Sequence record: PQ330092.1
Reading direction: 5' to 3' (one strand)
DNA length: 64,000 nt
Below, in pieces: positions 1 to 42,996 of the stretch. Position numbers and translations under genes: made by a program. The first letter of the stretch is position 1, and every line of letters starts with the position of its first letter. A model generated the notes under the pieces. The model was not told the origin of the DNA. It ran no database searches and worked only from the letters and a program-made list of their open reading frames with translations.

Positions 1-2
1 AC

Positions 3-233
3 AATAACATTGGTGTGTATGCGATGAAGTGGGGTCAACCTGATTTGAAGCGTGAAATTCACATCCCTAAGTACAATTACAATGCATTTGACGAACAGTG
101 TTTTCAACTATCGTGTACTGACCCTGACTATGCTATCATTCAGTTCTATATGGAATTGCAGATAGCATTTAACAGTAATTTGTATATTAACTTATTGGCG
201 ATGAACATCGATGAAGTATTCAAAAACATTTAA
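3..233 (+). CDS. FQ-box family protein, 5'-truncated by window edge
   Basis: Frame open from window start; contains DEQCFQLS motif. Confidence 0.7.
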   Translation, partial: NNIGVYAMKWGQPDLKREIHIPKYNYNAFDEQCFQLSCTDPDYAIIQFYMELQIAFNSNLYINLLAMNIDEVFKNI

Positions 234-429
234 TCGAATTGAATACATGAGAACTGTGAGTGCAGTGTGGGACATATGGTTCACTACTAAACCAAAAATG
301 GATTACCATGACTTTAAGCTCTTGTTCTTCGTTGGCTCTAACAAACAGGATGTTGCAATGAAGGGTTATATTCAGCACTTACAGGAACTAATCCAGAAGA
401 GAATATATGAAAATAATAGACCAAAATGA
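211..429 (+). CDS. small hypothetical protein, paralog of next gene
   Basis: Overlapping co-directional ORF; DFKLLFFVGS..YIQHL resembles ELKVLMYLGT..YINSL in 407-598. Confidence 0.7.
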   Translation: MKYSKTFNRIEYMRTVSAVWDIWFTTKPKMDYHDFKLLFFVGSNKQDVAMKGYIQHLQELIQKRIYENNRPK

Positions 430-598
430 CATTGCTAAACTATTCAATATATATTCTACTAGAATGATGCAAACAGACTCATATAGTACTGAATTCAAAG
501 AGTTGAAAGTCCTGATGTACTTGGGAACCCAATATCAGGAACAAGTTATTTTGGAATATATTAATTCGCTGAAGAAGGATATCCGTTATGTACGATGA
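407..598 (+). CDS. small hypothetical protein, paralog of previous gene
   Basis: Tight packing; similarity to 211-429. Confidence 0.7.
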   Translation: MKIIDQNDIAKLFNIYSTRMMQTDSYSTEFKELKVLMYLGTQYQEQVILEYINSLKKDIRYVR

Positions 599-1148
599 TT
601 TAGATATTGCGTTTGAACGTATGGTAATTTTAATGCAATGTGCAGAAATGCATGAAACAATCCGTCGCACCAAAGGGATTGAATATACAAGTAAACTATT
701 CTCATACGAAAGTCGTCGAGGGATGGATCATTTTTACTGCACTGATTGTTCAAAGTTTTCAGTACTGAAATATTATCATCCTACTGTTTCCAATAATAGT
801 TTAATATCCACATATGACGGTGATCTGTTTAGTGTAATGTATGACACATTACATCCATCAATTTCAATCTATAAAGATTGCGATAGTAGTTTATCGTATA
901 TAATTGAAGATTACTTATCTCCTAATACTGAAGAGAATATTTTTCAGAACAGTGTGTTGCATGATGAATTAAGTATAAAATGCATCTATATGTTCAATAA
1001 GTTAAAAGAGTACGCCGATAATAATTACTTAATTGATAAGTTAGCAGTATTGTCTGTTTCCGTTTTTAATACAAATGACATTGATATGAAATACTATAAT
1101 GAGATTTGTAAAGTACATCATATGTATAAGGAATTACTATGTTATTAA
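588..1148 (+). CDS. FQ-box family hypothetical protein
   Basis: TEENIFQNSVLHD motif; tight gene packing. Confidence 0.75.
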   Translation: MYDDLDIAFERMVILMQCAEMHETIRRTKGIEYTSKLFSYESRRGMDHFYCTDCSKFSVLKYYHPTVSNNSLISTYDGDLFSVMYDTLHPSISIYKDCDSSLSYIIEDYLSPNTEENIFQNSVLHDELSIKCIYMFNKLKEYADNNYLIDKLAVLSVSVFNTNDIDMKYYNEICKVHHMYKELLCY

Positions 1149-1741
1149 ATGCAAATAAATGTTGTAGTGCAGATGTGCATTTGTTTTTTAAGAAATTAGT
1201 AAATGATATTATCTATATGCAAGAAATCATTTATCACAAAAGAATGGACTTAGAAAAAGCATTAGTTCAGTTCTCTTTTATGCTGGATGGGATTATTACT
1301 TTAGATGGTGATGGATTGCGTATAGCATTTGACGGTAATTCAAATAGGGTTTTCTATTGGATGAATAATAAATTATGTTCCTCAATTTGCCGCACTTTTT
1401 ATAACCCTATTTCGGACTTATATCAATTGGTGTATTCTAAAGGTGCAGTAGAAGCATCATATGGTGATAGTTATGCCCTAGGAAAGAGTATTCCATATAT
1501 GAATACATTTGATATTGAATTAGTCAGTACTGATGAAGATGCAATGTTCACAAATGATTTAACGATGGAACGTGAATCTGCAATGAGATATATTACAAAT
1601 TCTATGCATACATTCTTTCAACGAGTAGAATTTGATAATGTATATATAGCAAATGTAAATATTTTTATTGACCTGTGTCAGTACTTGAGAAGTGTTTGTG
1701 ATTTTGATGAAAGCTATTGTAAGCTTTATACTGAGGTATAA
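1139..1741 (+). CDS. hypothetical protein
   Basis: 200-aa ORF in packed cluster; FQ box not clear. Confidence 0.7.
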   Translation: MLLNANKCCSADVHLFFKKLVNDIIYMQEIIYHKRMDLEKALVQFSFMLDGIITLDGDGLRIAFDGNSNRVFYWMNNKLCSSICRTFYNPISDLYQLVYSKGAVEASYGDSYALGKSIPYMNTFDIELVSTDEDAMFTNDLTMERESAMRYITNSMHTFFQRVEFDNVYIANVNIFIDLCQYLRSVCDFDESYCKLYTEV

Positions 1742-1746
1742 AACAA

Positions 1747-2109
1747 ATGAACACATTAAGTATTACATACTATACAACTAAAAAATTAGTTACTTGTTTA
1801 ATATCATTGAAGACAAACCATGATGATATGTTTGATATGGCTGCATATGAATTAGAATTATCAGAAGATGGCTTCAAGAGCTATGAAGTATATAGCTATG
1901 TTCGTGAAGATGTAATTGACACTACACTAATGCAAGAGGATGAGTTATTCCAAGAAAGTTTAGTATGGGATAATAAGTACGATTGTAACTTTGATTTCTT
2001 ATGTTTAATCCAGAAAGAAATGAAAAGAATCTTTGATAATTATCCAGTGAAGAGATTGAGTACTGGACCGGAGCAGTACAGGAGAATTTTATTCCGTTAT
2101 GAAGACTGA
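1747..2109 (+). CDS. FQ-box family hypothetical protein
   Basis: QEDELFQESLVWD. Confidence 0.75.
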   Translation: MNTLSITYYTTKKLVTCLISLKTNHDDMFDMAAYELELSEDGFKSYEVYSYVREDVIDTTLMQEDELFQESLVWDNKYDCNFDFLCLIQKEMKRIFDNYPVKRLSTGPEQYRRILFRYED

Positions 2110-2434
2110 ATTAGTGAAAGTAATGTACGCTACTCATATTAAACTACTACTTGTGAAATTTGATTATAATAAAAAACATAATGATTTCTATACTTTAATT
2201 CGTGATGAAAATACATTCTCCTTGCGATGCAACAATATACCGTTGAAGATAAATGATTTTACTTCACTTGACGAGGGTGAATTATTTCAAGAATCATTAG
2301 TTTTTAATAGTAATATAAAAATTGATATAGAAGTTATTAAAAAATACCAGATTTTATTGAACAAAATTATGAATTGTTATCCATGTGAAATAGGTGGTCA
2401 TATGCAGTTCAAATCAAAAATGTATGAATTATGA
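2099..2434 (+). CDS. FQ-box family hypothetical protein
   Basis: DEGELFQESLVFN; close paralog of 1747-2109. Confidence 0.75.
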   Translation: MKTELVKVMYATHIKLLLVKFDYNKKHNDFYTLIRDENTFSLRCNNIPLKINDFTSLDEGELFQESLVFNSNIKIDIEVIKKYQILLNKIMNCYPCEIGGHMQFKSKMYEL

Positions 2435-2978
2435 GGTTTATATGTTAGATAAAAAAATGAACTCTGGAACCCAATATAATCATCTTAAGTTGGATACATT
2501 CGAATCAGCTATCAGTACAGCACAAGATATAATTGATATTATCAAGTTCATTAAAGAAGATAAGTTCAAATGTTTGAAAATACTAAATCGTTCAATGTAC
2601 CGTGATAAAAATATTCATGTATCAGTACGTAGACCGAAAGATCAAGAAAGTGGGAGAGATTTCTATAACAACAGTGAGCAGTTCGAATGTGAATATGATC
2701 CAGAATTCAGAGGCGGTTTCATGTGTTACAGTATAAAGGATACCTCACACATTGAGATACGTTCATCGAAAGGTGGCATACGTACATTAGAGTTCATTGA
2801 TATAGTTTTAAATCAGGAATACTACTTTCAACTATCATTATTGTTTCCTGCATACGATTTAGGAGTTCTATTCATGTATAAGTACTTTCATGAGCACTGG
2901 AATGAAGACTTCTATCTGGACTTAGAAGATTACCAATTAGTTTGGAAAGAAATGGTAGAACTTCGCAACCCATCTTGA
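2424..2978 (+). CDS. FQ-box family hypothetical protein
   Basis: NQEYYFQLSLLFP; start moved to internal ATG (uncertain). Confidence 0.75.
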   Translation: MNYEVYMLDKKMNSGTQYNHLKLDTFESAISTAQDIIDIIKFIKEDKFKCLKILNRSMYRDKNIHVSVRRPKDQESGRDFYNNSEQFECEYDPEFRGGFMCYSIKDTSHIEIRSSKGGIRTLEFIDIVLNQEYYFQLSLLFPAYDLGVLFMYKYFHEHWNEDFYLDLEDYQLVWKEMVELRNPS

Positions 2979-3004
2979 CACCCTCCGATTCTTTGTGATA
3001 TAAT
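2975..3004 (+). promoter_or_regulatory. sigma70-type early promoter
   Basis: TTGACA 2975-2980 and extended -10 TGaTATAAT 2996-3004. Confidence 0.8.
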
Positions 3005-3037
3005 CTCTTTATATTAATTGTAAAGGGTTATATCACA

Positions 3038-3514
3038 ATGTCCAAAGACCTATCATTTAGCAATGCACAAAAAATAGCAAAAGACATTATCAGGGTTTAT
3101 AAATTCCTTGCGAATGTTACTGAAGATTTTTCCGTGGGGGAACATAAAGTTATTAAACGAAATGGATACCTTTCATTTATGGATGGGTTACTCTATAGTT
3201 CAGATGAATCAACTTGTAGCATTAGAGTTCTTGATGAAGTACCAAGTGGTGATTTTATTTCATACCATTTTCCAAGTTCAGATAATTTCAAATACTACAA
3301 TCATCTTCTTATAAATGAAGCATTTAATACGATTGTAATTAACACTGAAGAAGAGTTCTTCCAGTACAGTACTGTGTATCCAGAGAGGATTGTTTTCAGT
3401 TCAGTGATTTTAACAGCCCTTAAAAATGAACTAAATTCCGATAGTGATCATTTCTACTTGGACCTGAACAATGTCGATTGTATTATTGAGTACATGGAGA
3501 AAAATGGTTTATGA
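3038..3514 (+). CDS. FQ-box family hypothetical protein
   Basis: TEEEFFQYSTVYP. Confidence 0.75.
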   Translation: MSKDLSFSNAQKIAKDIIRVYKFLANVTEDFSVGEHKVIKRNGYLSFMDGLLYSSDESTCSIRVLDEVPSGDFISYHFPSSDNFKYYNHLLINEAFNTIVINTEEEFFQYSTVYPERIVFSSVILTALKNELNSDSDHFYLDLNNVDCIIEYMEKNGL

Positions 3515-4005
3515 TTACTACAGAATATGATTACTATGGTGTTTTAGAATTTACAGAAAATATCTATCGCATTGCAAAGGAGTTCAGAAGTCCTAAGCCT
3601 TTTGGTGGTATGTTTCAATACGATGAGTTCAGTTCATCTAAAGGAAGACTAGCATTTACTAATGTTAGAGGTAATCAAATCTACGCGGAGTACTTTGATG
3701 ATAATGACTTTCATTACAAAACCGAATACATTTCATATTGCCCTGGGTCTGATTTGAAGATTAATATTGATACCTTTAGAGATTCAGTGCTTGTCCCTTA
3801 TAGTGAGTTAGTTTTCATGACAGAAGAAATGTACTTTCAAGAGTCTTGTATTCATGATGTAAAAGTACTTAATGCTATGTTATTTTATGGTGCACTACTT
3901 CATCATTACAAATACAAACAACGATTCTTTTTAGATTTAGTAGTATACTATAAATGCGTGGATTATTTGAATGCAAAATACGACAACAATTCAGTACATG
4001 ACTGA
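3511..4005 (+). CDS. FQ-box family hypothetical protein
   Basis: TEEMYFQESCIHD; ATGA overlap. Confidence 0.75.
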   Translation: MITTEYDYYGVLEFTENIYRIAKEFRSPKPFGGMFQYDEFSSSKGRLAFTNVRGNQIYAEYFDDNDFHYKTEYISYCPGSDLKINIDTFRDSVLVPYSELVFMTEEMYFQESCIHDVKVLNAMLFYGALLHHYKYKQRFFLDLVVYYKCVDYLNAKYDNNSVHD

Positions 4006-4333
4006 TGGTACTGAATACTTTGTTTCAAGATATGTAATCAACCACAACCATTATGTAACCTATATTCCAGAGTACAATCAATTTTATATCCAGATTTATC
4101 AAAATAATGGAAAGATAAATGATATATATTCAGAAATAAAAATCCCTGATTATAGTACTTTATCAGAAGAGGAATTGTTTCAGGAGAGCACTATCAGTAC
4201 TGAAGATGTGTACGAAATAATGGAATACCAAAAGGTACTTAAACATTTTCATGAAGCAAATGATATACAAATAGATATTGTTAAACCGTGGTGTTACAAT
4301 ACATATGAGGTAAATTATGTTAGAAATGATTAA
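3971..4333 (+). CDS. FQ-box family hypothetical protein
   Basis: SEEELFQESTIST; true start possibly 3998. Confidence 0.75.
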   Translation: MQNTTTIQYMTDGTEYFVSRYVINHNHYVTYIPEYNQFYIQIYQNNGKINDIYSEIKIPDYSTLSEEELFQESTISTEDVYEIMEYQKVLKHFHEANDIQIDIVKPWCYNTYEVNYVRND

Positions 4334-4730
4334 AATTATGCAACGCTGTCTTGTTGATCAACACGGGGTATATGGATATCGTTTAAGTGCTCCTATTGAC
4401 AAAAATAAAACAACCTATGTAAGCTATAATGCTGTACATGGATTTGATATATTCATTGATGCCAACAATAAAATCAAACAAGCTAAGGATGTGTCTATAA
4501 TGACCCCTGATGAGTTATTCCAGTACAGCTTAGTTCTTCCTACATGTATCGATTTACAACGTCTAGGAGCGATACAGAAGGTTTTACGCGAACATAAAGT
4601 ACAACCCAATAAAGTCACACACATTCCAGAAACAATCTTCAAAACCATAGAAGTAGAAACTCCTGATTATATGTTAAGTGATGATGAGTACTACGAGAAA
4701 CACTTCCCTGGTAAAGTTTGGAGAGACTAA
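4317..4730 (+). CDS. FQ-box family hypothetical protein
   Basis: TPDELFQYSLVLP. Confidence 0.75.
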   Translation: MLEMIKIMQRCLVDQHGVYGYRLSAPIDKNKTTYVSYNAVHGFDIFIDANNKIKQAKDVSIMTPDELFQYSLVLPTCIDLQRLGAIQKVLREHKVQPNKVTHIPETIFKTIEVETPDYMLSDDEYYEKHFPGKVWRD

Positions 4731-5221
4731 TGAACCGAAAGTACAGAGAAACTATGAAGTTCGCTAAGGAGTGTTTAGAAGTGTTTGAGTTCATCAATGC
4801 TCATAAAGATTTACTCCATAGATACATTGCAATCAGTGAGACAGATGACCATAGGTACATATGTTCTCGAATTCAAGATAAGATATATAAGATTGTGTTC
4901 TCGGAAACATACACAGATACATCTAATTCACTATATGATTTTGCACGTACTGATTACGTTTCATACAAATCTTGGTCTGATAGTATTAAAATTGTGCACA
5001 AGCAAAATACATTTTATTCTTTTCTTACGGACATTTCCGAAGAAAGTTACTTTCAAAACAGTTTAATTTATACAGAAAAAGAACTCAAAATGTTATTCAT
5101 AATGTCGTACTTTAAAAAGTACTGCAAATTTAATACATTATCTTTTGAGATTTCTGCAATGAAAGTATTCATTAAAAATGTAAAAGAATTAAAGAGGGCT
5201 TTTAATGTACATAGAAAATGA
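4718..5221 (+). CDS. FQ-box family hypothetical protein
   Basis: SEESYFQNSLIYT. Confidence 0.75.
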   Translation: MERLMNRKYRETMKFAKECLEVFEFINAHKDLLHRYIAISETDDHRYICSRIQDKIYKIVFSETYTDTSNSLYDFARTDYVSYKSWSDSIKIVHKQNTFYSFLTDISEESYFQNSLIYTEKELKMLFIMSYFKKYCKFNTLSFEISAMKVFIKNVKELKRAFNVHRK

Positions 5222-5747
5222 GAATGTAAAATGCATTACTGACATTTGTATAAAATTAATGAAAATTTTCATTAACCCAAAATACAAGACTCGTTCTTTA
5301 CGTCATAATATTGATGAGCATTGTACCATTAATATACTAGGTAGTATTCTTGATGTAAAATATGATGGTAAAATGTTATTCGGTATAAGAGAAGAGAAGA
5401 TAGATGATGCATTCTTTTCTTCTAAAGATAAATTTGAACCTTCTGATTATAAAGTGATTATTCGTGATGATAGCATCTATATTAGTAGTGATTATTCAAA
5501 TTACTTCGATAAAATATACACTGAAAACGTTGACTACCATTATGAAATGATTGATTTACCAGTAACAGACATTGATATGGAGAGAATCAAATTTTCATTA
5601 TCAGATAATGAGTACTTAGGTATACAAACATATTATTCACTACAAGGAAAGATTCCACCTGCTATGTATATAAGGATTGAGATTGGTAATGTATTCAATG
5701 ATAAGGTTATATCAATTGCTGATAAAATATTGGGGGTTGAATTATGA
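5205..5747 (+). CDS. hypothetical protein (degenerate FQ box?)
   Basis: SDNEYLGIQTYY at equivalent position. Confidence 0.7.
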   Translation: MYIENENVKCITDICIKLMKIFINPKYKTRSLRHNIDEHCTINILGSILDVKYDGKMLFGIREEKIDDAFFSSKDKFEPSDYKVIIRDDSIYISSDYSNYFDKIYTENVDYHYEMIDLPVTDIDMERIKFSLSDNEYLGIQTYYSLQGKIPPAMYIRIEIGNVFNDKVISIADKILGVEL

Positions 5748-6307
5748 ATATCAATGATTACCAATTTCATAGGCTTGAATTTCGTCATTGTGTTGCATTT
5801 GCAAAAACATTGATGTGCATCATTGACACTCTTTCATCCAAACAATTTCGTAAGGATAATGATTTATTTCTGAAAAAAGGTCGTGTGACATCATCCGATA
5901 TCTGTGTTGAACTATTTGTTGATATCAGTGTTGATACCGGAGACAGTACAAGGGTTGGTTGTATAGGTCATATTGGTACACATTGCTTCACATGGAATCC
6001 AAATACAAGTCAAGTACGAATTGATTATAGAAATTCACGTTGGGTTGATCTTAGTACTGAATCCGATTTAGAATCAGCTATGTTCCAGCTAAGTTTAATT
6101 CACAATCCTAATGAACTTCTTTACATTATTACTTTCAGTTATCTGTTACAAAACTACGATAAACCATCAGGGTTTTTCATAGAATCGGATATAGAAGAAA
6201 TTATGGAAGAGTTTCCTAGTTTAAAGGATATTCTGGTAGAAAAAGATTTCTATGAAGACTTCAGAGATTTATACGACATGCACTTGGAGTTATTTAAGAA
6301 TGGATAA
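5744..6307 (+). CDS. FQ-box family hypothetical protein
   Basis: LESAMFQLSLIHN. Confidence 0.75.
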   Translation: MNINDYQFHRLEFRHCVAFAKTLMCIIDTLSSKQFRKDNDLFLKKGRVTSSDICVELFVDISVDTGDSTRVGCIGHIGTHCFTWNPNTSQVRIDYRNSRWVDLSTESDLESAMFQLSLIHNPNELLYIITFSYLLQNYDKPSGFFIESDIEEIMEEFPSLKDILVEKDFYEDFRDLYDMHLELFKNG

Positions 6308-6818
6308 AGATGATATTCTAATTAGACTAATCAACAGTCTGTTAAATTTCGTGAATAGTGCCAGTGATACACACAATATAGGTGACATTGAATTCAAATC
6401 ATTTGGAATGTACGGTGAGGAAAAAACATATTATGCATCAATGAAATTCCAAGATTATTATGAAATGTTAGTTTCATTATCATACGAAGATGTGGACCCA
6501 AGATGGAGTTCCAGTATTTCACTATCGAGAATGGTAATTCGTAGTAAACATCGTTACATTTCGTCAAAGAATACTCCCAACTTGTTTGATATTGTTTTAA
6601 ATGAAAATACCAATCCTATATCTAAACATGATATCGTACCTTTAACTGATGAAGTACTTTTTCAATTGAGTACCATTTGTGATGAAGATGTGATATCATG
6701 TATGAAAATTTATGAGAAGGTTGGGAGTGATATTCCCATGAACTATTACCTAACGATAGATGGAACATACCTCAGAGATGAAGCTCTAGCGTACATTGAC
6801 AGTGTTTTACCAAAATAA
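6300..6818 (+). CDS. FQ-box family hypothetical protein
   Basis: TDEVLFQLSTICD; internal ATG chosen to minimise overlap. Confidence 0.75.
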   Translation: MDKDDILIRLINSLLNFVNSASDTHNIGDIEFKSFGMYGEEKTYYASMKFQDYYEMLVSLSYEDVDPRWSSSISLSRMVIRSKHRYISSKNTPNLFDIVLNENTNPISKHDIVPLTDEVLFQLSTICDEDVISCMKIYEKVGSDIPMNYYLTIDGTYLRDEALAYIDSVLPK

Positions 6819-6840
6819 AGACCCGTATTGGGTCTTTTTG
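6818..6840 (+). terminator. intrinsic terminator
   Basis: AAGACCC-gtatt-GGGTCTT plus T tract. Confidence 0.8.
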
Positions 6841-6850
6841 TGTTTACGTC

Positions 6851-6879
6851 TTTACAGTAGCATTCAGATGTGTTATAAT
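6851..6879 (+). promoter_or_regulatory. sigma70-type early promoter
   Basis: TTTACA-17 bp-TATAAT with TG extension. Confidence 0.75.
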
Positions 6880-6906
6880 CGCTTTTAATAGAGTACAGGA
6901 GAAGAT

Positions 6907-7473
6907 ATGAGTACTGAATTAATTAAAGAAGTTACCTTACTTCTGAAGCATTGTTTTAAGTTCATTCCTGATACTGGTTCACGCCAGTACATTAAAGTTA
7001 ATGAGAAATATAACATCAATATCCTTGTATCTGAAACTGCGAGCAGTTATGCTAACATTGAGTTGGATTCTGAAGAAAAATATACAGTATTACAAATCAT
7101 AGCAGATGTACAACGTAAACAAGATTATCGTTCTTCATTTTACAACGATTATCTGTGTGTTTGCTCAAACTTCAGTGAGAATAAAATTGTGTATAAGAAT
7201 TTATACACACATGAAGTGATTGATACATATAATTATAAAATTTCATCTGATGAATACAATGTGCTAATGTTCAACGCAAACCTTTTGTATGATGCCAGTA
7301 CTGTACGCTGTTTAGAGTTAGCATATAAAATTCCAAAGATCATGGAAAGAAAAGATTTGATTCACTTTAAAACTATTTTAAAATACAGTACAAAAGAATT
7401 AGAGGATTTAGTACAGGCTCTTAAGAATTTCATTAATGAACATGTACCTGTTAAATTCGAGGATGCACAATGA
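6907..7473 (+). CDS. hypothetical protein (degenerate FQ box?)
   Basis: AGGAG RBS; SDEYNVLMFNANLL. Confidence 0.7.
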   Translation: MSTELIKEVTLLLKHCFKFIPDTGSRQYIKVNEKYNINILVSETASSYANIELDSEEKYTVLQIIADVQRKQDYRSSFYNDYLCVCSNFSENKIVYKNLYTHEVIDTYNYKISSDEYNVLMFNANLLYDASTVRCLELAYKIPKIMERKDLIHFKTILKYSTKELEDLVQALKNFINEHVPVKFEDAQ

Positions 7474-8054
7474 ACCATATCAGAACTAAAATTTTGAGAC
7501 TCATGCATGACATTGCAGAACTTTCAGAGATTCATGACATTACAGAAATTGTTGAATTTGATGATTATCGACTGAAAATTGAAAACAAATCCAAACATCG
7601 TTTTGGATCAGTTCAGTTGGATGTATATAAAACTTATGAATTTTCTAAAAAAATTAAAAGTTCATGGGATACGATTACTATGTACATTCGCACATCCAGA
7701 AATCGTGAACGTATTGGTTCTATTTCTTCTAATATGGTATTTGCGAATGCATTACATGAAAAAATGAATAAAATTGTAGAATCTGATTTCAGTGAAGATG
7801 ATGGTTTTATTGGGTTGGATGTTCCACCAGAATTAGACCAAAGTGAAGATATTCGAGATGCATTCATTTTCCAGAAATCATTGTTGGACAATTACAAAGA
7901 ATTCGAGTACTTAATGCTTTGTTACGATACTGCAAAAGTTCTTGATTGTGGTGAACTAGTTATGTACAATGATTTTATCAATTACAAGACTGATGTTCTG
8001 AATACACTACTTCAAAATATAGAATCGGTTAAGGAAAAATATGAACGCTTATAG
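7470..8054 (+). CDS. FQ-box family hypothetical protein
   Basis: RDAFIFQKSLLDN. Confidence 0.75.
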   Translation: MNHIRTKILRLMHDIAELSEIHDITEIVEFDDYRLKIENKSKHRFGSVQLDVYKTYEFSKKIKSSWDTITMYIRTSRNRERIGSISSNMVFANALHEKMNKIVESDFSEDDGFIGLDVPPELDQSEDIRDAFIFQKSLLDNYKEFEYLMLCYDTAKVLDCGELVMYNDFINYKTDVLNTLLQNIESVKEKYERL

Positions 8055-8619
8055 TTATATGACAGAACGCCATCAGTTATTATATGATATCAGTACAAAA
8101 ATGTTATCAATTGTTAGTAGTGCAAAAGAAATTGAAAAACAATACCTCATCCGTGATGTAGCAATTTCATCTAAATGTTGGTCCAATGAATATTACGATC
8201 ACGGTATTCTTACTATTTCTGGGGCTAGAAATATTTGTATTGTAAAAAATAAAAATAAAAGTAATGAAGAGTGTGAGATTATAACCGATATACAAATTAA
8301 GGATGATGGAAGTTTTTCACACCACCCATTCCATATTAGTACTATTGGTGTTTTATATAATATTAAAGTACTATTCGGTGATGAAGAGTATGTGTTAAAA
8401 TCTATCAATCCAGAATCAAGTACAGTTGAAGAAGAACTGTTCCAGATGAGCACTGTTATACCTGAAGAGGTTCTTAGTACTGTTATTTTTTGTAGTTTAA
8501 TTTATCATGAATACAAAAAGTACCAGTTCGATTTCCACATGTTAGGAACATACATCTTCAATAATTTGAATGTAGATCGTTTAACAGCATTAAATGCAGC
8601 AATGGATAAGGTGCTATAA
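8041..8619 (+). CDS. FQ-box family hypothetical protein
   Basis: VEEELFQMSTVIP. Confidence 0.75.
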   Translation: MNAYSYMTERHQLLYDISTKMLSIVSSAKEIEKQYLIRDVAISSKCWSNEYYDHGILTISGARNICIVKNKNKSNEECEIITDIQIKDDGSFSHHPFHISTIGVLYNIKVLFGDEEYVLKSINPESSTVEEELFQMSTVIPEEVLSTVIFCSLIYHEYKKYQFDFHMLGTYIFNNLNVDRLTALNAAMDKVL

Positions 8620-9047
8620 TGACAAGAGATGATTGTTTGTACATATGGGATATAATTGAAACTACACTTTCAAATCCAGAAAATTATAAAACAAAAAAAA
8701 GACAACGACACAAAATATGGATAGATTTGTTCGTTGAGGGCATACACGCAGTGACTATTTGGGATTCACCGAGGGCATCATCATCTACTCTGTTGGACAA
8801 TGAATGCATTGATTGCATTAATTCCACTTTTCATCTCTACGGTACTACAATTTTTGGTACATTTCTGGATATTGAAAGTAAAGATGATATTGATTCACTT
8901 GCGTTACAATACCAAGTACTATATAATACTAAATTAATTTACGATTTAGTACTAGCTTCTTATGTGTATAAATTAATGATGAAATATAATCATATTTCTG
9001 TTTCAGTTTATACTAAGGATATTCTTTCATTAAGAGACAAAACATGA
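8619..9047 (+). CDS. hypothetical protein (degenerate FQ box?)
   Basis: IDSLALQYQVLYN; TAATG overlap. Confidence 0.7.
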   Translation: MTRDDCLYIWDIIETTLSNPENYKTKKRQRHKIWIDLFVEGIHAVTIWDSPRASSSTLLDNECIDCINSTFHLYGTTIFGTFLDIESKDDIDSLALQYQVLYNTKLIYDLVLASYVYKLMMKYNHISVSVYTKDILSLRDKT

Positions 9048-9553
9048 GTTTATTAAATGCACGCGAATTGGTTGAGATGTATGAGATTTTGTCTTCATAT
9101 AAAAATTCTCCAAAAGATGTAATTCTAAACAAAAAGTTCCATGTCAGTGTTGAACATATAACAAATATAGATATGATTTCTTTGGTGGAAAGTAATAAGT
9201 CAGGTCTGGAGCGTGATATCATGCGTTTGATTTATATTCCTAAACCATCATATACTAATGATAGTACTATTAGCAATGAGACATTCATGTATAGTCCTGG
9301 TACGGATTCTACTATAGTATCGCTGTCCAATAAATCAATGGATACTTTCCAATTCATCTATACCAGTACTGATAACATTGAAGAAATTGAATTTCAAAAC
9401 AATACATTAAGTCCATGTAGTAGTGTTATAACCTTTATGTCATATCTATGGTCAACTAAAACAAGTGCTGTTGTATATAGTTCAAATTATACACAAGATA
9501 GTATTGTTGAATCATATAAAGTTCTAAAGGAATACTATGAAAATAACAAATGA
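9044..9553 (+). CDS. FQ-box family hypothetical protein
   Basis: IEEIEFQNNTLSP. Confidence 0.7.
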   Translation: MSLLNARELVEMYEILSSYKNSPKDVILNKKFHVSVEHITNIDMISLVESNKSGLERDIMRLIYIPKPSYTNDSTISNETFMYSPGTDSTIVSLSNKSMDTFQFIYTSTDNIEEIEFQNNTLSPCSSVITFMSYLWSTKTSAVVYSSNYTQDSIVESYKVLKEYYENNK

Positions 9554-10118
9554 TTTTATTAAAAGTGTAGTACACCCTATGCTTAGTATTATGAAAAAAA
9601 TACAGAATCTACCGGAAGATAACGATTACAAGTTTAATCGTTTTGATTCAGATGTGTTTTGTATTGAAATTGAAATTAATAACAATCGCAATTTACATTT
9701 AAAATTCAAAGAATCTTCGAGTCCGTACTACAACTTTGATATGAATTTTAAAATAGATACTGACATTGAAGAAAACATAATATCAAATCATACTAGCAAA
9801 AATGGTTTTATGCATAGAACTACTATGTACAATAATAAAAATAGTATTATATCTAAATGGAATCAACAATTCACTAAAATTTGTGAAATTGAATATAATG
9901 ATTTTGGTGAAGAACATTACTTTCAGTTAAGTACAATTCATGAACTTCCACCATATGATTATGTTAAAACATGGTTTGATATTCATAATATAATTGATGA
10001 TGCAATCAAACTTCCATTTGGTGTGTCAATATCATATACTGCTCCTAAAACATTTGTTTTTACTGAAGATATGATTATGAAAAAGATATGGGCAATTATC
10101 CCACTTATGATGGATTAA
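9537..10118 (+). CDS. FQ-box family hypothetical protein
   Basis: GEEHYFQLSTIHE. Confidence 0.75.
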   Translation: MKITNDFIKSVVHPMLSIMKKIQNLPEDNDYKFNRFDSDVFCIEIEINNNRNLHLKFKESSSPYYNFDMNFKIDTDIEENIISNHTSKNGFMHRTTMYNNKNSIISKWNQQFTKICEIEYNDFGEEHYFQLSTIHELPPYDYVKTWFDIHNIIDDAIKLPFGVSISYTAPKTFVFTEDMIMKKIWAIIPLMMD

Positions 10119-10123
10119 ATTCG

Positions 10124-10161
10124 TACCAGGGGTTGACTCTGGTATTTTTGTATGATACATT
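10124..10161 (+). promoter_or_regulatory. terminator hairpin with embedded sigma70 promoter
   Basis: TACCAG/CTGGTA stem plus T5; TTGACT (10133-10138) in loop, 17 bp to TACATT. Confidence 0.6.
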
Positions 10162-10179
10162 GTCCTAAAGGAGAATTTT

Positions 10180-10731
10180 ATGAACTACAATCATGATCTT
10201 TTTACATTATGTGCATCCAAATGTGTTGATGGATGGACAGATAAAATCAATACCATAATTCATCGATATCTGGTCTTTAGTTCTCGTGCACGAAGTGAGG
10301 GGGCTATGGATTTCAAATATACACTATCTATTGATGGTGTAACTATCCATGCAGACGAAGAACGTCTGAGCATTAATTTGTATGATTCCTGTGTATTTGC
10401 TATTCACCAAAAGATGGGGAAAGGATGGGGTTGTAATAACATTAACTCAAAAGCTATCTTTTGGGTTGGTCACCACCAGACAGTACTTGATCCTTCAATC
10501 AAATCTAATCTTTTATCCGATAATATGGTTTATGATTTATTGTACTCCGAAGAACAACATTTTCAGTTAAGTACATTACATGATCTGGCACAGTACGAGG
10601 ATTGTTACAAAACATTAGAACTATGCCATTCCCTTGAACTTAAAGATAAATTGATACAAGTTTACCCTTCATTCTTTCATGAAGAAGTACAAAGTACACT
10701 AGATCATATTTTATATGGATACGATAAATGA
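10180..10731 (+). CDS. FQ-box family hypothetical protein
   Basis: AAGGAG RBS; SEEQHFQLSTLHD. Confidence 0.8.
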   Translation: MNYNHDLFTLCASKCVDGWTDKINTIIHRYLVFSSRARSEGAMDFKYTLSIDGVTIHADEERLSINLYDSCVFAIHQKMGKGWGCNNINSKAIFWVGHHQTVLDPSIKSNLLSDNMVYDLLYSEEQHFQLSTLHDLAQYEDCYKTLELCHSLELKDKLIQVYPSFFHEEVQSTLDHILYGYDK

Positions 10732-11330
10732 GAAAAAGTTATCAAGAAGCTATTGACTTAATTCGTGAAGTTATCAAGGTGGCTCCTGCTGCTATTGAGT
10801 TCAAGAAGTCCATATACAAGAAGTATGGGTCAATGTCGAGTATGTGCTTTCAAAAGAAACGTAGAGCATTCACTACCCAGTACTGGAATGATTCTATCAT
10901 CCTGAGTAATGAGACTCAGCGTATTTTAACACTAGAATCTGAACCTAATGAGTACGGGGAAGGGAACATTTGTGTACCTGATTATGATGAAATTAACTTC
11001 AACTGCGGTGATTTTGAAACAACATTATTACTTCATGAGGGTTATCCAGAAGGTGATGTATTAGCTGAGTACAATCCAAAAACTAAAATTCTCAAAAGAG
11101 GAATCCAGTTCACTATTAATAACAAAGATGATGTTCAAGCAGCACTGATGCAACTGAGTACAAGTGAACCTATCACTATTAGTGTAGAAGAGTTATGGGG
11201 AATTATTTCAGTACTCAATGAGTGCTACAAAGTAAAATCATTGCGTAAACACAGCATTATATTACATACCAATATGGCAAATATAAAATGTAAGCACATT
11301 CAAGAAATGGTGGTTCCAGATGGACTTTAA
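10728..11330 (+). CDS. FQ-box family hypothetical protein (variant)
   Basis: VQAALMQLSTSEP. Confidence 0.7.
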   Translation: MRKSYQEAIDLIREVIKVAPAAIEFKKSIYKKYGSMSSMCFQKKRRAFTTQYWNDSIILSNETQRILTLESEPNEYGEGNICVPDYDEINFNCGDFETTLLLHEGYPEGDVLAEYNPKTKILKRGIQFTINNKDDVQAALMQLSTSEPITISVEELWGIISVLNECYKVKSLRKHSIILHTNMANIKCKHIQEMVVPDGL

Positions 11331-11904
11331 AGAAATTGAAAGTAAATTAAAGTACTTCAAAGATATCAAACTTCTTTGGAAAAAGTATAAAGTTGATTAC
11401 AATTTCAGTGATGATGAGACAATAAAATACATTGAGATTAATATCAAAATCAAGTTCAAGAATAATAATTATGGTGAAGTAACCTTAAATCATACTGGTA
11501 TATCACTCAAGGACTATGATGGTACAACACTCGCATATTTTGACTTCACACCAGAACCAGGTGAAACACTACTTAGTGAGATAAATTCCTATGACATGGA
11601 AGTGTTCGGCGGGAATCCGTTACTGTTCCGACTTTCTGAAGAGTGGAGTGAAGAGTACTACACTTACAAAGATGGTGTAGTACTTGACATTCATGGAGAA
11701 GTTGTGAATGACTTGGAAGAACGTTTGTTCCAAGAATTGTGTGTTTCAAATACTTCATATGCATACAATCATATCCTTGACATGTTTGATTTATATAGTA
11801 AAATAGATGCTGAAATGAAGGCACATGGTATTCATTACCTTACAATTAACGACTATGCTCAACTCGAAACCGCTGTGAAAGCATTGACTAAAGTACTGAA
11901 ATAG
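11320..11904 (+). CDS. FQ-box family hypothetical protein
   Basis: LEERLFQELCVSN. Confidence 0.75.
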   Translation: MDFKEIESKLKYFKDIKLLWKKYKVDYNFSDDETIKYIEINIKIKFKNNNYGEVTLNHTGISLKDYDGTTLAYFDFTPEPGETLLSEINSYDMEVFGGNPLLFRLSEEWSEEYYTYKDGVVLDIHGEVVNDLEERLFQELCVSNTSYAYNHILDMFDLYSKIDAEMKAHGIHYLTINDYAQLETAVKALTKVLK

Positions 11905-11913
11905 GAATGAAAT

Positions 11914-12327
11914 ATGAAACTGTATCATGCGAGTACTGTAAAAATTGATAACTTTTATATCCCGTATGGTGGTCTTCATATGGGAGGTAAACACAGTGCT
12001 TTGGAAGCTGCATTACGCAAGCTGAGAAGCCCACTGAACGTAGTAGACGCATGTACAGTATACTTGCATACCTTAGAAGTTGATGTTGATAACGTGCTTC
12101 TGTGTGAAGATTTAGGCAGTGATGATGAGTGGCGTTCACTTATTGAGAATTGCACTGCTCAAGGTTATGATGCTGTTCAGTACAAAAATGATTACGAGCC
12201 AGACAATGTTCCTAGCTTTATGATTTGGGATGCATCTAAAGTTCGCATCATTGAAGTTGATGCTATGCATATGGATGAAGCTGAAATGATTATCGAAGAT
12301 TTTCTTGATGAATATGAAGGTGTATAA
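11914..12327 (+). CDS. putative ADP-ribosyltransferase-fold protein (ART-PolyVal-like)
   Basis: N-terminal KLYHAS, GLHMG..A and C-terminal GYDAVQYKNDYE..SFMIWD pattern typical of ART folds. Confidence 0.55.
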   Translation: MKLYHASTVKIDNFYIPYGGLHMGGKHSALEAALRKLRSPLNVVDACTVYLHTLEVDVDNVLLCEDLGSDDEWRSLIENCTAQGYDAVQYKNDYEPDNVPSFMIWDASKVRIIEVDAMHMDEAEMIIEDFLDEYEGV

Positions 12328-12863
12328 TGACTGACCCGATGGTAGCACTGGCACGTACTAAGTTACTATTAAAGATTGGTGAGATTTTTACGGTTCTTCT
12401 GTCCAATAATATTGATATTACTGAGCTAGATATTAAGCAACCGTGGGAAGTGACTATGTTCTCGGCGTTCCACCGATTGTCATATAAAGGTGAAAGTGTT
12501 CTTGATTTTAACCCTAAAGCAAAATTCATAGATTATGCTGCGTTGTACAGAGAGTTGCACCGAAATATTTATTCCGGTTGTATAACCAATAACTTCAAAG
12601 AAATTAAAGTTCAAACTGCATCACATGAGTTCAATGATTTACTTTATCCAGAATTTAATCTAACGGAAGAATTACTCTTTCAGTACTCGTTAATTCTCAC
12701 AAATCTCGAAACGCTAGAGTACTACAAAGAGTTAGTAGATATTTTTATGAATACACGACTTTCAAAAGATATTGTGATATTCTGGTATACAGAGCATGTT
12801 ACGGAGGAATTGCTTACTGAATTTCTTCTAAATATGACAGCTATAAAGGAGAAGTTATGTTAG
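12327..12863 (+). CDS. FQ-box family hypothetical protein
   Basis: TEELLFQYSLILT. Confidence 0.75.
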   Translation: MTDPMVALARTKLLLKIGEIFTVLLSNNIDITELDIKQPWEVTMFSAFHRLSYKGESVLDFNPKAKFIDYAALYRELHRNIYSGCITNNFKEIKVQTASHEFNDLLYPEFNLTEELLFQYSLILTNLETLEYYKELVDIFMNTRLSKDIVIFWYTEHVTEELLTEFLLNMTAIKEKLC

Positions 12864-13330
12864 ATATTTTAGGAAACATCGATACTGCAAATTATTTTAT
12901 CCAGGACGCACTGTTCAATACAGTTCAACAAGGATTAGAAGTTCGTCATAACGTTTACCAAGGTGATGGTTATTTCGTTGATATTGTTGAGGCACGAAAG
13001 AATACGTTTAATGTTAACATTACAACACTGGGTAGACAGAACATTGCACGAATTTTAGTAAGTAAAGATGAAATTGTATTGAGATACAGTGCTAAGTTTA
13101 TGTTGACTTATAAGAAAAAAACTGATATGTTCAGTACTAATTTATTTGATGAGCCATTTGACCTTGAAGATATTGAAGCTACTTTCTTTACTCAAAGTAC
13201 TATGGTAAAATACACTGATGTTCAATTTTCTGCTGATGTAATGTCGGAAACATTACAAATGATCAAGGTATTATTTTATGCATTTGAGCAATTTAGAGAA
13301 GAAAGAAACAAGGTTAACAACCACAGATGA
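12857..13330 (+). CDS. FQ-box family hypothetical protein (variant)
   Basis: IEATFFTQSTMVK. Confidence 0.7.
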   Translation: MLDILGNIDTANYFIQDALFNTVQQGLEVRHNVYQGDGYFVDIVEARKNTFNVNITTLGRQNIARILVSKDEIVLRYSAKFMLTYKKKTDMFSTNLFDEPFDLEDIEATFFTQSTMVKYTDVQFSADVMSETLQMIKVLFYAFEQFREERNKVNNHR

Positions 13331-13691
13331 ACTAATAGAGGCGATCACTAAGGAGTCAAAATATCACAAAGGGATTCGTCTATATTTTATAGATATTGGT
13401 TCAATGGAAGGCATATACATTTATGGTTCACAATCTTTATCTTATGATGTAATGCCAAAAAAACATGTAAAAATCTTTTTAGGTTCAGATAAAAAAACTT
13501 TCTTGACAATTAATGATAAAAACGTTATTATGAATTCGTTGGGTCATGATAAGGTGGAAATTGATCTAAACACACTGGAGGATATTGATTTTTTTCAATA
13601 CGAGTGTTTAGGTGTTGACTTACATGGCATTAGTAGCGATATGATAAAATCATTAATCAAATATTTCGAAGGTGTTCATAAATGTATCTAA
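13278..13691 (+). CDS. FQ-box family hypothetical protein
   Basis: EDIDFFQYECLGV; start uncertain. Confidence 0.7.
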   Translation: MHLSNLEKKETRLTTTDELIEAITKESKYHKGIRLYFIDIGSMEGIYIYGSQSLSYDVMPKKHVKIFLGSDKKTFLTINDKNVIMNSLGHDKVEIDLNTLEDIDFFQYECLGVDLHGISSDMIKSLIKYFEGVHKCI

Positions 13692-14179
13692 CTAAATCAA
13701 TGAAAAATTCATTTGATAAAATCAAGAGTTGTCTTGATGGGGAAAATATTACAAGTGTTACACAAACTGCTGACCAAATTCAAAGCAGTTCAAGTGATTG
13801 TACTGTTATTTTAGGTTTACATAGTCTACGTTTATCAATAGTAAATAATATTGACAACACTGCTATTGTAATCACACCATGCCATATTCAAAATGAGAAT
13901 GGTGTATATCTTCATCACATGGGAACAGTATTTCATATTTTCAATACAAACGAAAACATTGTTAAGGAATACAAATCTCTTAATATTGATTCAGGTGAAT
14001 TATTTCAAATGAGTACTTTGTACTCATGTAATTTTACAGATACTTCATGTATTTTGCCATTTTTCTTGGAAATTATTAAGAAAATGGAAAATTTAAAACG
14101 TGAATACAATAAAGAAATGGTTCCTGAAGCTATATTAAATATTACTAATGCTATAGAGAAGTATAATGCAGTGACTTAA
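13682..14179 (+). CDS. FQ-box family hypothetical protein
   Basis: DSGELFQMSTLYS. Confidence 0.75.
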   Translation: MYLTKSMKNSFDKIKSCLDGENITSVTQTADQIQSSSSDCTVILGLHSLRLSIVNNIDNTAIVITPCHIQNENGVYLHHMGTVFHIFNTNENIVKEYKSLNIDSGELFQMSTLYSCNFTDTSCILPFFLEIIKKMENLKREYNKEMVPEAILNITNAIEKYNAVT

Positions 14180-14221
14180 TAAAAACGCACATGGAGTGCA
14201 TTAGAAGATCAAGGATAGATC

Positions 14222-14695
14222 ATGGAGATTAAAACTGTTGAAAATGGGAAAATTGATGACATTTTAGAGTTGGACGCATTCAAAGTTCATGATATAATGT
14301 TTAATGTGAAGGACATTATTCAATGTCTATTTTTGTGTAGCAAGACAATGCATGATTTTTTTCACAACCCAAATACTAACGTTTTTATACTAACAATCAG
14401 TACTGAAAACTCGTTTATCATGGGTATGCCTATGAGTACAAATGAACAATATATTGATTGTGTTATTCGTAATAACGATAGTATTACGCCACAATCTGAA
14501 GTACGTAAAAAGAAAAACACCTACACAATCAAAGATGATAAAATTATGATGTGCTGTAGTAAAGGGTTTATATTAGATAATTTTATCGTAAAAGACAGTT
14601 ATCACGACTTTAAAGTATCTGAAAATCAATCCAATGTAGTTCTTTATGCGAGTGACATAGAAAGTCTAACAGTTAAAGATCCTAGTTTGGAGTAA
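14222..14695 (+). CDS. hypothetical protein
   Basis: 157-aa ORF with AAGGA RBS. Confidence 0.7.
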   Translation: MEIKTVENGKIDDILELDAFKVHDIMFNVKDIIQCLFLCSKTMHDFFHNPNTNVFILTISTENSFIMGMPMSTNEQYIDCVIRNNDSITPQSEVRKKKNTYTIKDDKIMMCCSKGFILDNFIVKDSYHDFKVSENQSNVVLYASDIESLTVKDPSLE

Positions 14696-25266: not shown

Positions 25267-25845
25267 ATGAATGTATTAGATTTAAGTACTAAGCTGATTA
25301 GTATGCGTAATGAGTGGTACGATTGGTTTTATAATGGTACTGATATGGATTTTTCAAAATATCCATTTATGGAATCAGGATGTGATGCAAGATACCGCTG
25401 GTTGAGCAAAGATTGTTCTGGTTTACATATTCTAGTTGACGATAGTGGTCAGGGAATTATAAAAGATTTACTTCAAGTTGAACAACTCGTCCATGATAAT
25501 TGGTGTGATAACGATCCATACCTTGGAAATATGATTTATGTAAGTGAAGATGATTGCATATTCGTTATCCAGCGTCATGGTAATTCTATGTTTTATGTAG
25601 CAGATAGCAGTACTCCAGAAGGTGCAGCAGCCGATGGACTTATGCCTAAGATTGATATATTGGAATTTGGATTACCTGAGCACTTCCAGATTAGTACTTT
25701 ATACGATATTCCACCACTTGAGTTCTTTGAAGAATTTAAATTGTACTACAATGATCTTCAAAAATTGAGTACTGATCGACGCATTGAAATAACTGTTAAG
25801 TACATGGACGGAACGAAATTAACTGATACGGGGATAGAATTTTGA
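25267..25845 (+). CDS. FQ-box family hypothetical protein
   Basis: LPEHFQISTLYD. Confidence 0.75.
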   Translation: MNVLDLSTKLISMRNEWYDWFYNGTDMDFSKYPFMESGCDARYRWLSKDCSGLHILVDDSGQGIIKDLLQVEQLVHDNWCDNDPYLGNMIYVSEDDCIFVIQRHGNSMFYVADSSTPEGAAADGLMPKIDILEFGLPEHFQISTLYDIPPLEFFEEFKLYYNDLQKLSTDRRIEITVKYMDGTKLTDTGIEF

Positions 25846-26531
25846 TTAAAGATTTAGATAGAATTTTATATGTACTAAGGGGTGTAATTACATTACATCC
25901 ACAAATCAATCGAATTGAAAGTACATTTCAGTTGGAGTCAAGAGAAACTCCATATTCACATATATCAAATGTAGTTGGTTCACTCAGTACTGAAGACTCG
26001 TCTTACGATATTTGTGTATGTGAAGTACAACCAAGTTCGGATCTTGGATTTGCTATTTTTGATAAAAATCAAAATCTCATTAGTATGTTTCAGTGCAATA
26101 ATCCTTTTTGGAAAACATGCCTGTATCCAGAGTGGGCTATGCTTGATCCAACCAAGAGTACCATTAAAGTTTATGACTCTAAAAATGATGAAGTCGTTAT
26201 TGATTTAGATGAGTCAATGTCAGAGGAAGAACACTTTCAGCTAATGATGATGCGTGCTATGCCTGAATACAATGCAATGATTAACACTGTGCAATACATT
26301 AAGGATACCATGCCAGCGTTGCGTACACATGAGTTTTGTCATCCGGTATTGTATGAACATCTAGATTTAGACTTCAGTACTATTAAATTTAAAGATAGTG
26401 TTAAAAAATATATTCAAGAGAATGTTAAATTTGATTTTATTAGTACTATGAACAATAATCCAAAAACTAATTTTAGGCATCAGTACAATGAATCTTTGTC
26501 TAATGGACGTGATACCAGTTGGTGGAAATAA
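25842..26531 (+). CDS. FQ-box family hypothetical protein
   Basis: SEEEHFQLMMMRA; TTG start. Confidence 0.7.
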   Translation: MIKDLDRILYVLRGVITLHPQINRIESTFQLESRETPYSHISNVVGSLSTEDSSYDICVCEVQPSSDLGFAIFDKNQNLISMFQCNNPFWKTCLYPEWAMLDPTKSTIKVYDSKNDEVVIDLDESMSEEEHFQLMMMRAMPEYNAMINTVQYIKDTMPALRTHEFCHPVLYEHLDLDFSTIKFKDSVKKYIQENVKFDFISTMNNNPKTNFRHQYNESLSNGRDTSWWK

Positions 26532-26532: not shown

Positions 26533-26796
26533 ATGAATATTCAAGATAGATTACAATTACTGTACACACTTGAACAGGCTGCTTATGATCTTGTTCGAAA
26601 AATCTCAGATGAACTACCTAAAGGAACTAAAGTTCGTGTACGTGAGATGAATTATTTTTCTGGAGTAATTGAAGAACAAGTACTAACAGTGAATAAAGTA
26701 ACATACTATGAATCTGAGTTGTCTATTCAGTGTGAATCTGATGATGGATTAATATCATATTATGGAACTGATGTAGATATAGAGGTAATAAAATGA
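26533..26796 (+). CDS. small hypothetical protein (family-like)
   Basis: ELPKGTKVRVR..LTVNKV pattern; internal ATG. Confidence 0.7.
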   Translation: MNIQDRLQLLYTLEQAAYDLVRKISDELPKGTKVRVREMNYFSGVIEEQVLTVNKVTYYESELSIQCESDDGLISYYGTDVDIEVIK

Positions 26797-39830: not shown

Positions 39831-40121
39831 ATGAAAGTACTAGTACGTAATAATACGGAAGTAGCAAATGTATTAGAAGATTCCGATTTTATTAATGTTG
39901 CGTTCGATCAAATTAGTGCAGTAGCACTTGAATTAAAAAATGTAGATGAATCTGAGCGTGTGCTGAATGGTTTTGCAATTGTACTTGAATTAATGAAGGA
40001 AGTACTANNNNNNNNNNNNNNNNNNNNNGTTGATGCGGTTCAACATGCAGAAGCTGTGCGTAAAGAACACGGTACATTCTCTGACAAAAAATACATTCAA
40101 ACTGATGAGGTAAAAGAATAA
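39831..40121 (+). CDS. hypothetical protein (contains N gap)
   Basis: GGAG RBS before ATG 39831. Confidence 0.65.
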   Translation: MKVLVRNNTEVANVLEDSDFINVAFDQISAVALELKNVDESERVLNGFAIVLELMKEVLXXXXXXXVDAVQHAEAVRKEHGTFSDKKYIQTDEVKE

Positions 40122-40122
40122 T

Positions 40123-40569: not shown

Positions 40570-40579
40570 TATTGTGAAA

Positions 40580-40608
40580 AGGAATCCTATCATTGGATTC
40601 CTATTTTT
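40580..40608 (+). terminator. intrinsic terminator
   Basis: GGAATCC / GGATTCC plus T tract. Confidence 0.7.
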
Positions 40609-40689
40609 ATTGCTGTATATCAATTTTCCATTGATCATATTTTGATCTATATGAGCTAAATACCCAAGGAATCATTGTTACTAGGGTAG

Positions 40690-42456: not shown

Positions 42457-42457
42457 G

Positions 42458-42934: not shown

Positions 42935-42996
42935 CTGTTATAAACTGTACACCTTAAGTTTTATTTTTAAAAATTTGAGTTAAGTACAGAAAAAGT

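Follow-up and report, generated by a model that had tools for sequence, protein, structure and literature searches.

Escherichia phage JP4 (PQ330092.1), a 121Q/RaK2-like jumbo phage belonging to Asteriusvirus, carries a tandem array of small, highly divergent genes whose products share a short box centred on the residues FQxS. The stretch of JP4 DNA analysed here, hereafter the window, is 64,000 nucleotides (nt) long, and the array occupies positions 3-14179 on its plus strand. The array is probably a lineage-specific expansion of early, non-structural, single-domain host-interaction proteins, and the best reading of the box is that it forms the core of the fold that these proteins share, or its functional centre. 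An earlier note, made from the sequence alone, had instead proposed a modular system in which unrelated N-terminal domains each carry the same docking segment for one shared hub. Window positions 1-14200 correspond to JP4 183611-197810 at 100% identity; the genomes of 121Q, PBECO4, phAPEC6, slurp01 and other Asteriusvirus phages are 97-98% identical to this region, and those of a second group including ph0011 are 84-86% identical. All of the array genes are annotated 'hypothetical protein'.

The conserved box

Twenty-one plus-strand open reading frames (ORFs) between 3 and 14179 carry a box of the form h-[ST]-E-E-x-[YLF]-F-Q-x-S-[LT]-[VIL]-[YHFW]-[DN], where h is hydrophobic, and the 19 boxes quoted in the earlier note were all found where it had placed them. 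The plus-strand ORFs of positions 1-14200 contain 12 copies of the strict pattern [ED][ED]xxFQxS, whereas 1000 residue shuffles averaged 0.012 and never gave more than one; the shorter FQxS is found 18 times in the same ORFs, against 0.55 expected. The remaining 50 kb of the window, with 3.5 times more residues, contains no strict box and six FQxS matches. Synonymous codons within the box vary freely (Phe, TTC 22 and TTT 21; Gln, CAG 24 and CAA 20; Ser, AGY 22 versus TCN 13), which indicates that selection acts on the protein rather than on the DNA.

Across 75 members the box spans 14 residues, the first half of which comprises a hydrophobic residue (-6), S or T (-5), E (-4), E (-3), any residue (-2) and Y, L or F (-1), followed in the second half by F (0), Q (+1), any residue (+2), S (+3), L or T (+4), V, I or L (+5), Y, H, F or W (+6) and D or N (+7). 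Information content peaks at E-4, E-3, F0, Q+1, S+3, +4 and +5, and positions -2 and +2 are variable. The distance from the box to the C-terminus is 54 ± 9 residues, and to the N-terminus 107 ± 26, in proteins that are small (about 105-205 amino acids, aa) and mostly acidic (median isoelectric point 5.0), and no transmembrane-like stretch was seen in them, except in one ORF whose called start is doubtful. Helix-capping rules are well established, and under them the hydrophobic residues at -6 and -1, together with S or T at -5, would fit a helix N-cap with a hydrophobic staple. Positions -2 and +2, four residues apart, would then share one face of the helix, with -1, 0, +3 and +4 on the opposite face, and this division into variable and conserved faces points to a packed helix and away from a free docking peptide.

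Extent and distribution of the family

The window edge cuts the array, which begins near JP4 169.5 kb, about 14 kb upstream of the window. Between 169.5 and 197.8 kb there are about 44 members, 41 of them recovered with an iterated hidden Markov model and three box-bearing ORFs added by hand, and the whole JP4 record gives 57 six-frame profile matches at E≤0.01, some of which form a second array at 43.8-66 kb while others are isolated copies at 80.8, 209.7, 247.9 and 264.3 kb. The large array of very divergent genes described in the earlier note is thus real and larger than had been noted. A profile scan of related jumbo phages, which that note had suggested, gave 33 matches in RaK2, where the copies carry the same box, 21 in the Salmonella phage Munch, 5 in GAP32, 4 in CBB and none in PA5oct. 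The family is restricted to one lineage, within which copy number ranges from 0 to 57 among relatives, and it accounts for about 7% of the JP4 genome.

Searched exhaustively with HMMER, 1.84 billion cluster representatives yielded only 41 matching proteins, nearly all of which map to JP4 genes or their kin. P0026 has no JP4 match by blastp and maps to Munch-like phages, and P0036, which keeps the box, has no match in JP4 (blastp) or in the phage collection; P0011 (567 aa, nine matching stretches) was discounted as a likely repeat artefact. The tblastn matches of one member all fall in phages larger than 320 kb. In PHROGs the same proteins are divided among many unlinked groups (phrog_12674, 9317, 13866, 32681, 28549, 34017, 22855, 38467, 34636 and 35972), all labelled 'unknown function' and with no function or motif recorded. 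The family has no match in Pfam, NCBIfam or PADLOC, and neither it nor the box is mentioned in the literature on JP4, Sharanji, phAPEC6, CBB and RaK2 or in a survey of 224 jumbo phages; the earlier note, which recognised no described function for the box, is borne out on this point across Pfam, the PDB and this literature.

A single predicted fold

The similarity among members extends well beyond the box. When a profile was built from non-window sequences only, the window proteins aligned to it over most of its 149 positions (3038-3514 over 1-135, 4730-5221 over 1-144 and 7470-8054 over 15-142), and some members cross-match other PHROGs over their full length. With the N-terminal parts considered by themselves, leave-one-out profiles scored 11 of 34 members as high as, or higher than, all but 4 of 200 shuffles.

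An AlphaFold2 model of the 3038-3514 protein, built on a 51-sequence family alignment, is a single α/β domain with a predicted template modelling score (pTM) of 0.73. It comprises a helix (residues 7-25), a β meander (31-87), the box helix (104-111), a further helix (116-131), a strand (138-142) and a final helix (143-155). The box helix is the best-predicted part, with a predicted local distance difference test score (pLDDT) of about 94; the N-terminal helix of long members is predicted with similarly high confidence and is absent from short members (105-137 aa). The model matches independently predicted BFVD models of uncharacterised proteins from phages 121Q, SP27, RaK2 and GAP32, from Yersinia fHe-Yen9 phages and from Serratia phage BF at 12-21% identity, the better matches covering 163-191 columns with template modelling (TM) scores of 0.53-0.66 and a probability of 1.0. 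Fold searches of the PDB (Foldseek, VIA-wide) and the ESM Atlas with the model gave no credible match, a profile search of PDB sequences found nothing, and an ESM Atlas feature search gave no usable match.

On these profiles and predicted structures, the box is probably the best-conserved segment of a single diverged domain and not a tag grafted onto unrelated domains. The modular arrangement proposed earlier does not agree with the shared full-length fold predicted for paralogs of 12-21% identity, or with profile alignments reaching positions 1-144 of 149, and full-length structural homology, which the earlier note had named as the outcome that would tell against it, was largely found, for a subset of members.

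Gene organisation, expression and virion content

The genes are tightly packed, with 47 of 59 junctions overlapping or separated by no more than 12 nt (median -4), and they form translationally coupled cassettes of six to eight behind sigma70-type promoters. Five of the nine gaps of at least 35 nt hold a sigma70-like site scoring at least 10/12. The best sites, at 2975 (12/12) and 6851 (11/12), are both intergenic and both have an extended TG, and a sixth gap holds the site at 10133, which scores 9/12 with an extended TG. The division of the array by near-consensus promoters at 2975, 6851 and 10133, as previously noted, is thus borne out at the first two positions and weaker at the third, and terminator-like hairpins were found at 6817 and 10123. 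Cassettes behind promoters of this type would most likely be synthesized early by the host RNA polymerase, and early host-polymerase transcription of the array, as the earlier note had supposed, is plausible and consistent with this organisation. Wastewater metatranscriptome contigs include fragments of related arrays, although such contigs cannot show transcription and may reflect DNA carry-over.

Members were not found in virions by mass spectrometry: the phAPEC6 orthologs gp404c-434c are absent from the 62 published virion proteins of that phage, and the RaK2 members gp378 and gp412-427 are absent from its 54. This argues against a packaging or injection signal, one of the roles that the earlier note had offered for the box.

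Selection and repertoire turnover

Between JP4 and ph0011 the ratio of nonsynonymous to synonymous substitution (dN/dS) is 0.04-0.32 in every gene, including those in which the box is eroded, which indicates that all of these are real, constrained genes. Pooled values are 0.25 for the N-terminal parts, 0.13 for the box ± 8 residues and 0.23 for the C-terminal parts. Divergence between the two phages is a mosaic, with amino-acid identity ranging from 53% to 97% between neighbouring genes, which suggests allelic replacement by recombination. The proteins of 588-1148, 3038-3514 and 7470-8054 are 53-57% identical to their ph0011 counterparts, with dS>1, and their neighbours are 85-97% identical.

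Copy number differs even between phages that are about 97% identical, as phAPEC6 carries an extra, distinct member, gp428c (125 aa, GEEEMFQYSTVF), at the place corresponding to position 2099, which has no equivalent in JP4. Similarity among members falls with rank distance along the array, neighbours being more alike. Together, the mosaic divergence, the extra phAPEC6 member and the decay of similarity with distance point to tandem duplication, loss and recombinational exchange.

A proposed repertoire of host-interaction proteins

These observations can be accommodated by a model in which JP4 encodes more than 50 tandem-duplicated copies of one kind of small, acidic, soluble, non-virion α/β protein. 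The first half of the box (hydrophobic, S/T, E, E, x, hydrophobic) would serve as a helix-start signal, and the second half would lead from the short helix into a turn that joins the variable β-sheet half of the domain to its conserved C-terminal helix-strand-helix half. The variable sheet and its loops would carry specificity, with the box holding either the fold or a common functional site. The repertoire may thus comprise diversified cytoplasmic binders or inhibitors of host or defence proteins, acting in host takeover or counter-defence, and its content would change as genes are duplicated, lost and exchanged by recombination between related phages. The idea of diversified target binding, already present in the earlier note, remains a reasonable one.

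Several points weigh against this account. Only 10 of 946 pairs of N-terminal parts are detectable pairwise with phmmer, and in hhalign comparisons of shallow sub-family profiles of these parts the probability never exceeded 36%, a level that reversed controls matched; the supposed unrelatedness of the N-terminal parts therefore stands at the level of pairwise comparison, although it does not survive comparison by independent profile and model. Because phmmer and shallow hhalign are too insensitive here, the one-domain conclusion rests on the deeper profiles and on structure. The β region of the 3038-3514 model is itself of low confidence (pLDDT 46-67), and a model of the 9537-10118 protein, which shows the same element order, has a pLDDT of 55 and was used only for that order. 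Accordingly, the support for full-length homology, from profiles and predicted structures, covers some of the members and not all. In addition, the five conserved polar positions of the box (E, E, Q, S and D/N) exceed what a purely structural helix start would need and could form a common binding or catalytic site. Lastly, the proposed binder or counter-defence function is drawn by analogy.

Alternative roles for the box

The polar positions also bear on the possibility that the box is an exposed docking element tethering the members, and whatever targets they bind, to one hub such as ClpP/ClpX, the sliding clamp or RNA polymerase, on the F-box or SOCS-box adaptor principle invoked in the earlier note, a role that appears unlikely. 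Across genera the box is much more strongly conserved than the sequence on either side of it, and it is the same in RaK2 and in distant representatives, its five conserved polar residues would suit a common interface, and ClpP is encoded in the window. Moreover, a loose likeness to the clamp-binding motifs of bacteria (QL[SD]LF or QLxLxL) is seen in the segment Q-x-S-[LT]-[VIL]-[YHFW], an example being QLSLLF in 2442-2978. Compared with that consensus, Q is present in 75 of 75 members, L at the second position in 15 of 75, S at the third in 63 of 75 and L at the fourth in 35 of 75, with V, I or L at the fifth, and the clamp-like segment lies in a predicted folded context. Against a docking role, however, the N-terminal parts do not form separate domains of their own, the prediction for the box is a helix embedded in the domain and not a free peptide, its variable positions -2 and +2 would lie on one helix face, and several members with an eroded box are still under purifying selection.

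As for the peptidases, the earlier note had placed a ClpP or HslV-like one in the window, and ClpP is indeed encoded there (39087-39779), but a PF00227 search of the JP4 record detected no HslV-like or proteasome-like gene. All of the relatives RaK2, GAP32, CBB, Munch and PA5oct have ClpP, with 0-33 copies of the family and no co-variation between the two; as PA5oct has ClpP and lacks the family, co-occurrence with ClpP is uninformative. Nothing was found that supports a shared hub. A related and similarly doubtful proposal is that the E-E..F-Q.S..D surface is a common interface through which more than 50 early proteins deliver different host or defence proteins to one machine, such as a protease, the clamp or RNA polymerase; if true, the family would amount to a phage-encoded combinatorial adaptor repertoire.

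The same residues could alternatively form a shared active site or small-molecule site, making the family one of enzymes or of 'sponges', for example for defence nucleotide signals. The invariant Q and the near-invariant E, E, S and D/N lie within 12 residues, the proteins are small, soluble and acidic, and known phage signal sponges are likewise small proteins; these features speak for the idea, though it too appears unlikely.

A proteolytic processing site resembling TEV/NIa ENLYFQ|S or 3C LEVLFQ|GP, from which the C-terminal 50 aa would be released, is very improbable, although as a sequence the likeness is striking. With Q taken as P1, E is found at P6 in 56 of 75 members, F at P2 in 74 of 75 and Y at P3 in 24 of 75. 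However, unlike a cleavage site, the box has a variable P1' (mostly Y, L, Q, N, E or M) and stays conserved as far as P6', the segment is modelled as a helix in the folded core (pLDDT about 94) rather than as an extended linker, and no NIa, 3C or trypsin-like peptidase was detected in the JP4 record (PF00863, PF00548 and PF13365), although the PF00548 search is weak, its control having been silent. A packaging or injection signal is scarcely credible: a variable protein set with one common short segment follows the logic of the phage T4 internal-protein locus and its capsid-targeting sequence, but the orthologs are missing from both the phAPEC6 and the RaK2 virions, and the box is internal with no prohead-protease site after it.

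Gene order in the array and genomic setting

All genes listed for the array, like the two outlying members, lie on the plus strand. The array enters the window with a member cut by its edge (3-233, C-terminal part; JP4_CDS0456, 178 aa in full; box DEQCFQLS), followed at 211-598 by two small ORFs of a different paralogous family (211-429 and 407-598; box LGTxYQE..YI..L). This second tandem family, with the fuller box 'LGTNYQExYVxxYIxxLxxxIxxK', comprises about 29 genes for proteins of 52-86 aa at JP4 163117-169474, directly upstream of the FQxS array, and these two copies are interspersed in the window. The next FQxS member, at 588-1148 (186 aa; box EENIFQNS), matches the independent profile at an E-value (E) of 5.7e-8, whereas the 200-aa ORF at 1139-1741, with TDEDAMFTNDL on the box columns and E 0.4, is a doubtful and strongly eroded member. 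Two short members follow, at 1747-2109 (120 aa, without the N-terminal helix; EDELFQES) and 2099-2434 (111 aa; EGELFQES), and then a member of 178 aa at 2442-2978 (QEYYFQLSLLF).

The 12/12 promoter-like site with extended TG lies at 2975-3004, in the 59-nt gap before 3038. Behind it come the modelled protein (3038-3514, 158 aa; EEEFFQYS; pTM as given above), a member at 3511-4005 (164 aa; EEMYFQES), short members at 3971-4333 (120 aa; EEELFQES) and 4317-4730 (137 aa; PDELFQYS), and a member at 4730-5221 (163 aa; EESYFQNS). The 180-aa ORF at 5205-5747 probably belongs to the family despite its eroded box (per-sequence E 0.002), and it is succeeded by members at 5744-6307 (187 aa; ESAMFQLS) and 6300-6818 (172 aa; DEVLFQLS). 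An 88-nt gap then holds an intrinsic terminator-like hairpin (6817-6837) followed by the 11/12 promoter-like site with extended TG (6851-6879).

The following cassette begins with a 188-aa member at 6907-7473, in which DEYNVLMFNANLLYD aligns on the box (E 4e-4), and continues with members at 7470-8054 (194 aa; DAFIFQKS) and 8041-8619 (192 aa; EEELFQMS), a 142-aa member at 8619-9047 with DSLALQYQVLYN aligned on the box (E 3e-4), and members at 9044-9553 (169 aa; EEIEFQNN) and 9537-10118 (193 aa; EEHYFQLS), the last being the second modelled protein. A terminator-like hairpin at 10123-10145 overlaps the weaker promoter-like site at 10133 (TTGACT N17 TACATT, 9/12, TG; within 10123-10161). Beyond it lie members at 10180-10731 (183 aa; EEQHFQLS), 10728-11330 (200 aa; variant box AALMQLST) and 11320-11904 (194 aa; variant box EERLFQEL).

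A non-member gene of 137 aa is inserted at 11914-12327. Its ph0011 ortholog is annotated 'putative ADP-ribosyl transferase', and it has no Pfam match. This gene and part of the next are the only parts of the query common to phage A4, which suggests a mobile insert. The array then resumes with members at 12327-12863 (178 aa; EELLFQYS), 12857-13330 (157 aa; eroded box EATFFTQST, E 1e-5) and 13278-13691 (137 aa; variant box DIDFFQYE), and ends with the gene at 13682-14179 (165 aa; SGELFQMS). The four ORFs without a canonical box that start at 5205, 6907, 8619 and 12857 all align to the family profile with the eroded box in register (E 1e-5 to 2e-3), and the ORF at 14222-14695 is not a member by that profile. 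Two outlying members are found at 25267-25845 (LPEHFQISTLYD) and 25842-26531 (SEEEHFQLMM).

Outside the array, the window encodes an RNA-repair pair consisting of T4-type RNA ligase 1 (Rnl1, 26793-27935) and polynucleotide kinase-phosphatase (PNKP, 28759-29691), a DNA ligase (35991-37409), ClpP, a Sir2-family protein (44816-45574), a PIN-PhoH fusion (46812-48251), two metallophosphoesterases and NrdD. RaK2 has up to three ClpP-like matches. A low-GC stretch of the window at 40008-44556 contains seven runs of N, 664 bases in total. Elsewhere in the JP4 record, 125.3-143 kb and 145.4-163 kb form a direct repeat of about 20 kb, the annotated genes of the first stretch having counterparts of matching size and product in the second, always at the same distance. 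The repeat includes DksA-like and acetyltransferase genes, contains no FQxS members, and is probably a terminal repeat written twice or an assembly artefact.

Comparison with known systems and significance

Many tandem copies of one small protein with no assigned function, confined to a single lineage and variable in copy number, are also a feature of other jumbo-phage paralog expansions. Iyer et al. describe such a lineage-specific expansion in Bacillus phage G, of a zinc-ribbon protein present in about 35 copies. The JP4 family differs from it in lacking a zinc ribbon and in having more copies (57 six-frame matches), and it would surpass in size every paralogous expansion noted to date in phage genomes, with a fold that has no solved relative.

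In F-box and SOCS-box proteins, an autonomous box domain of 40-50 aa docks on Skp1 or Elongin and is joined to binding domains that are unrelated to one another. These families and the poxvirus PRANC proteins resemble the JP4 family in being large and diversified with one conserved segment toward the C-terminus, but in the JP4 family that segment is a 14-residue helix-turn element inside a single shared predicted fold. The internal proteins IPI-III of T4, which are packaged in the virion from a hyperplastic locus, carry an N-terminal, cleaved capsid-targeting sequence. They too are variable small proteins with a short conserved segment, and the content of their locus varies among related phages, whereas the box of the JP4 family is internal and none of its members appears in the virion proteomes.

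A well-studied group of Escherichia coli, Klebsiella and Salmonella jumbo phages, among them 121Q, PBECO4, phAPEC6 and RaK2 and several of them candidates for phage therapy, devotes about 7% of its coding capacity to one undescribed family. Treating these proteins as one family unites at least ten 'unknown' PHROGs and puts right the impression of hundreds of unrelated ORFans in these genomes. Purifying selection combined with turnover of the repertoire between close relatives is the pattern expected of host-takeover or counter-defence genes, and the family, with its more than 50 natural variants on a single small fold, offers a testable set for finding host targets.

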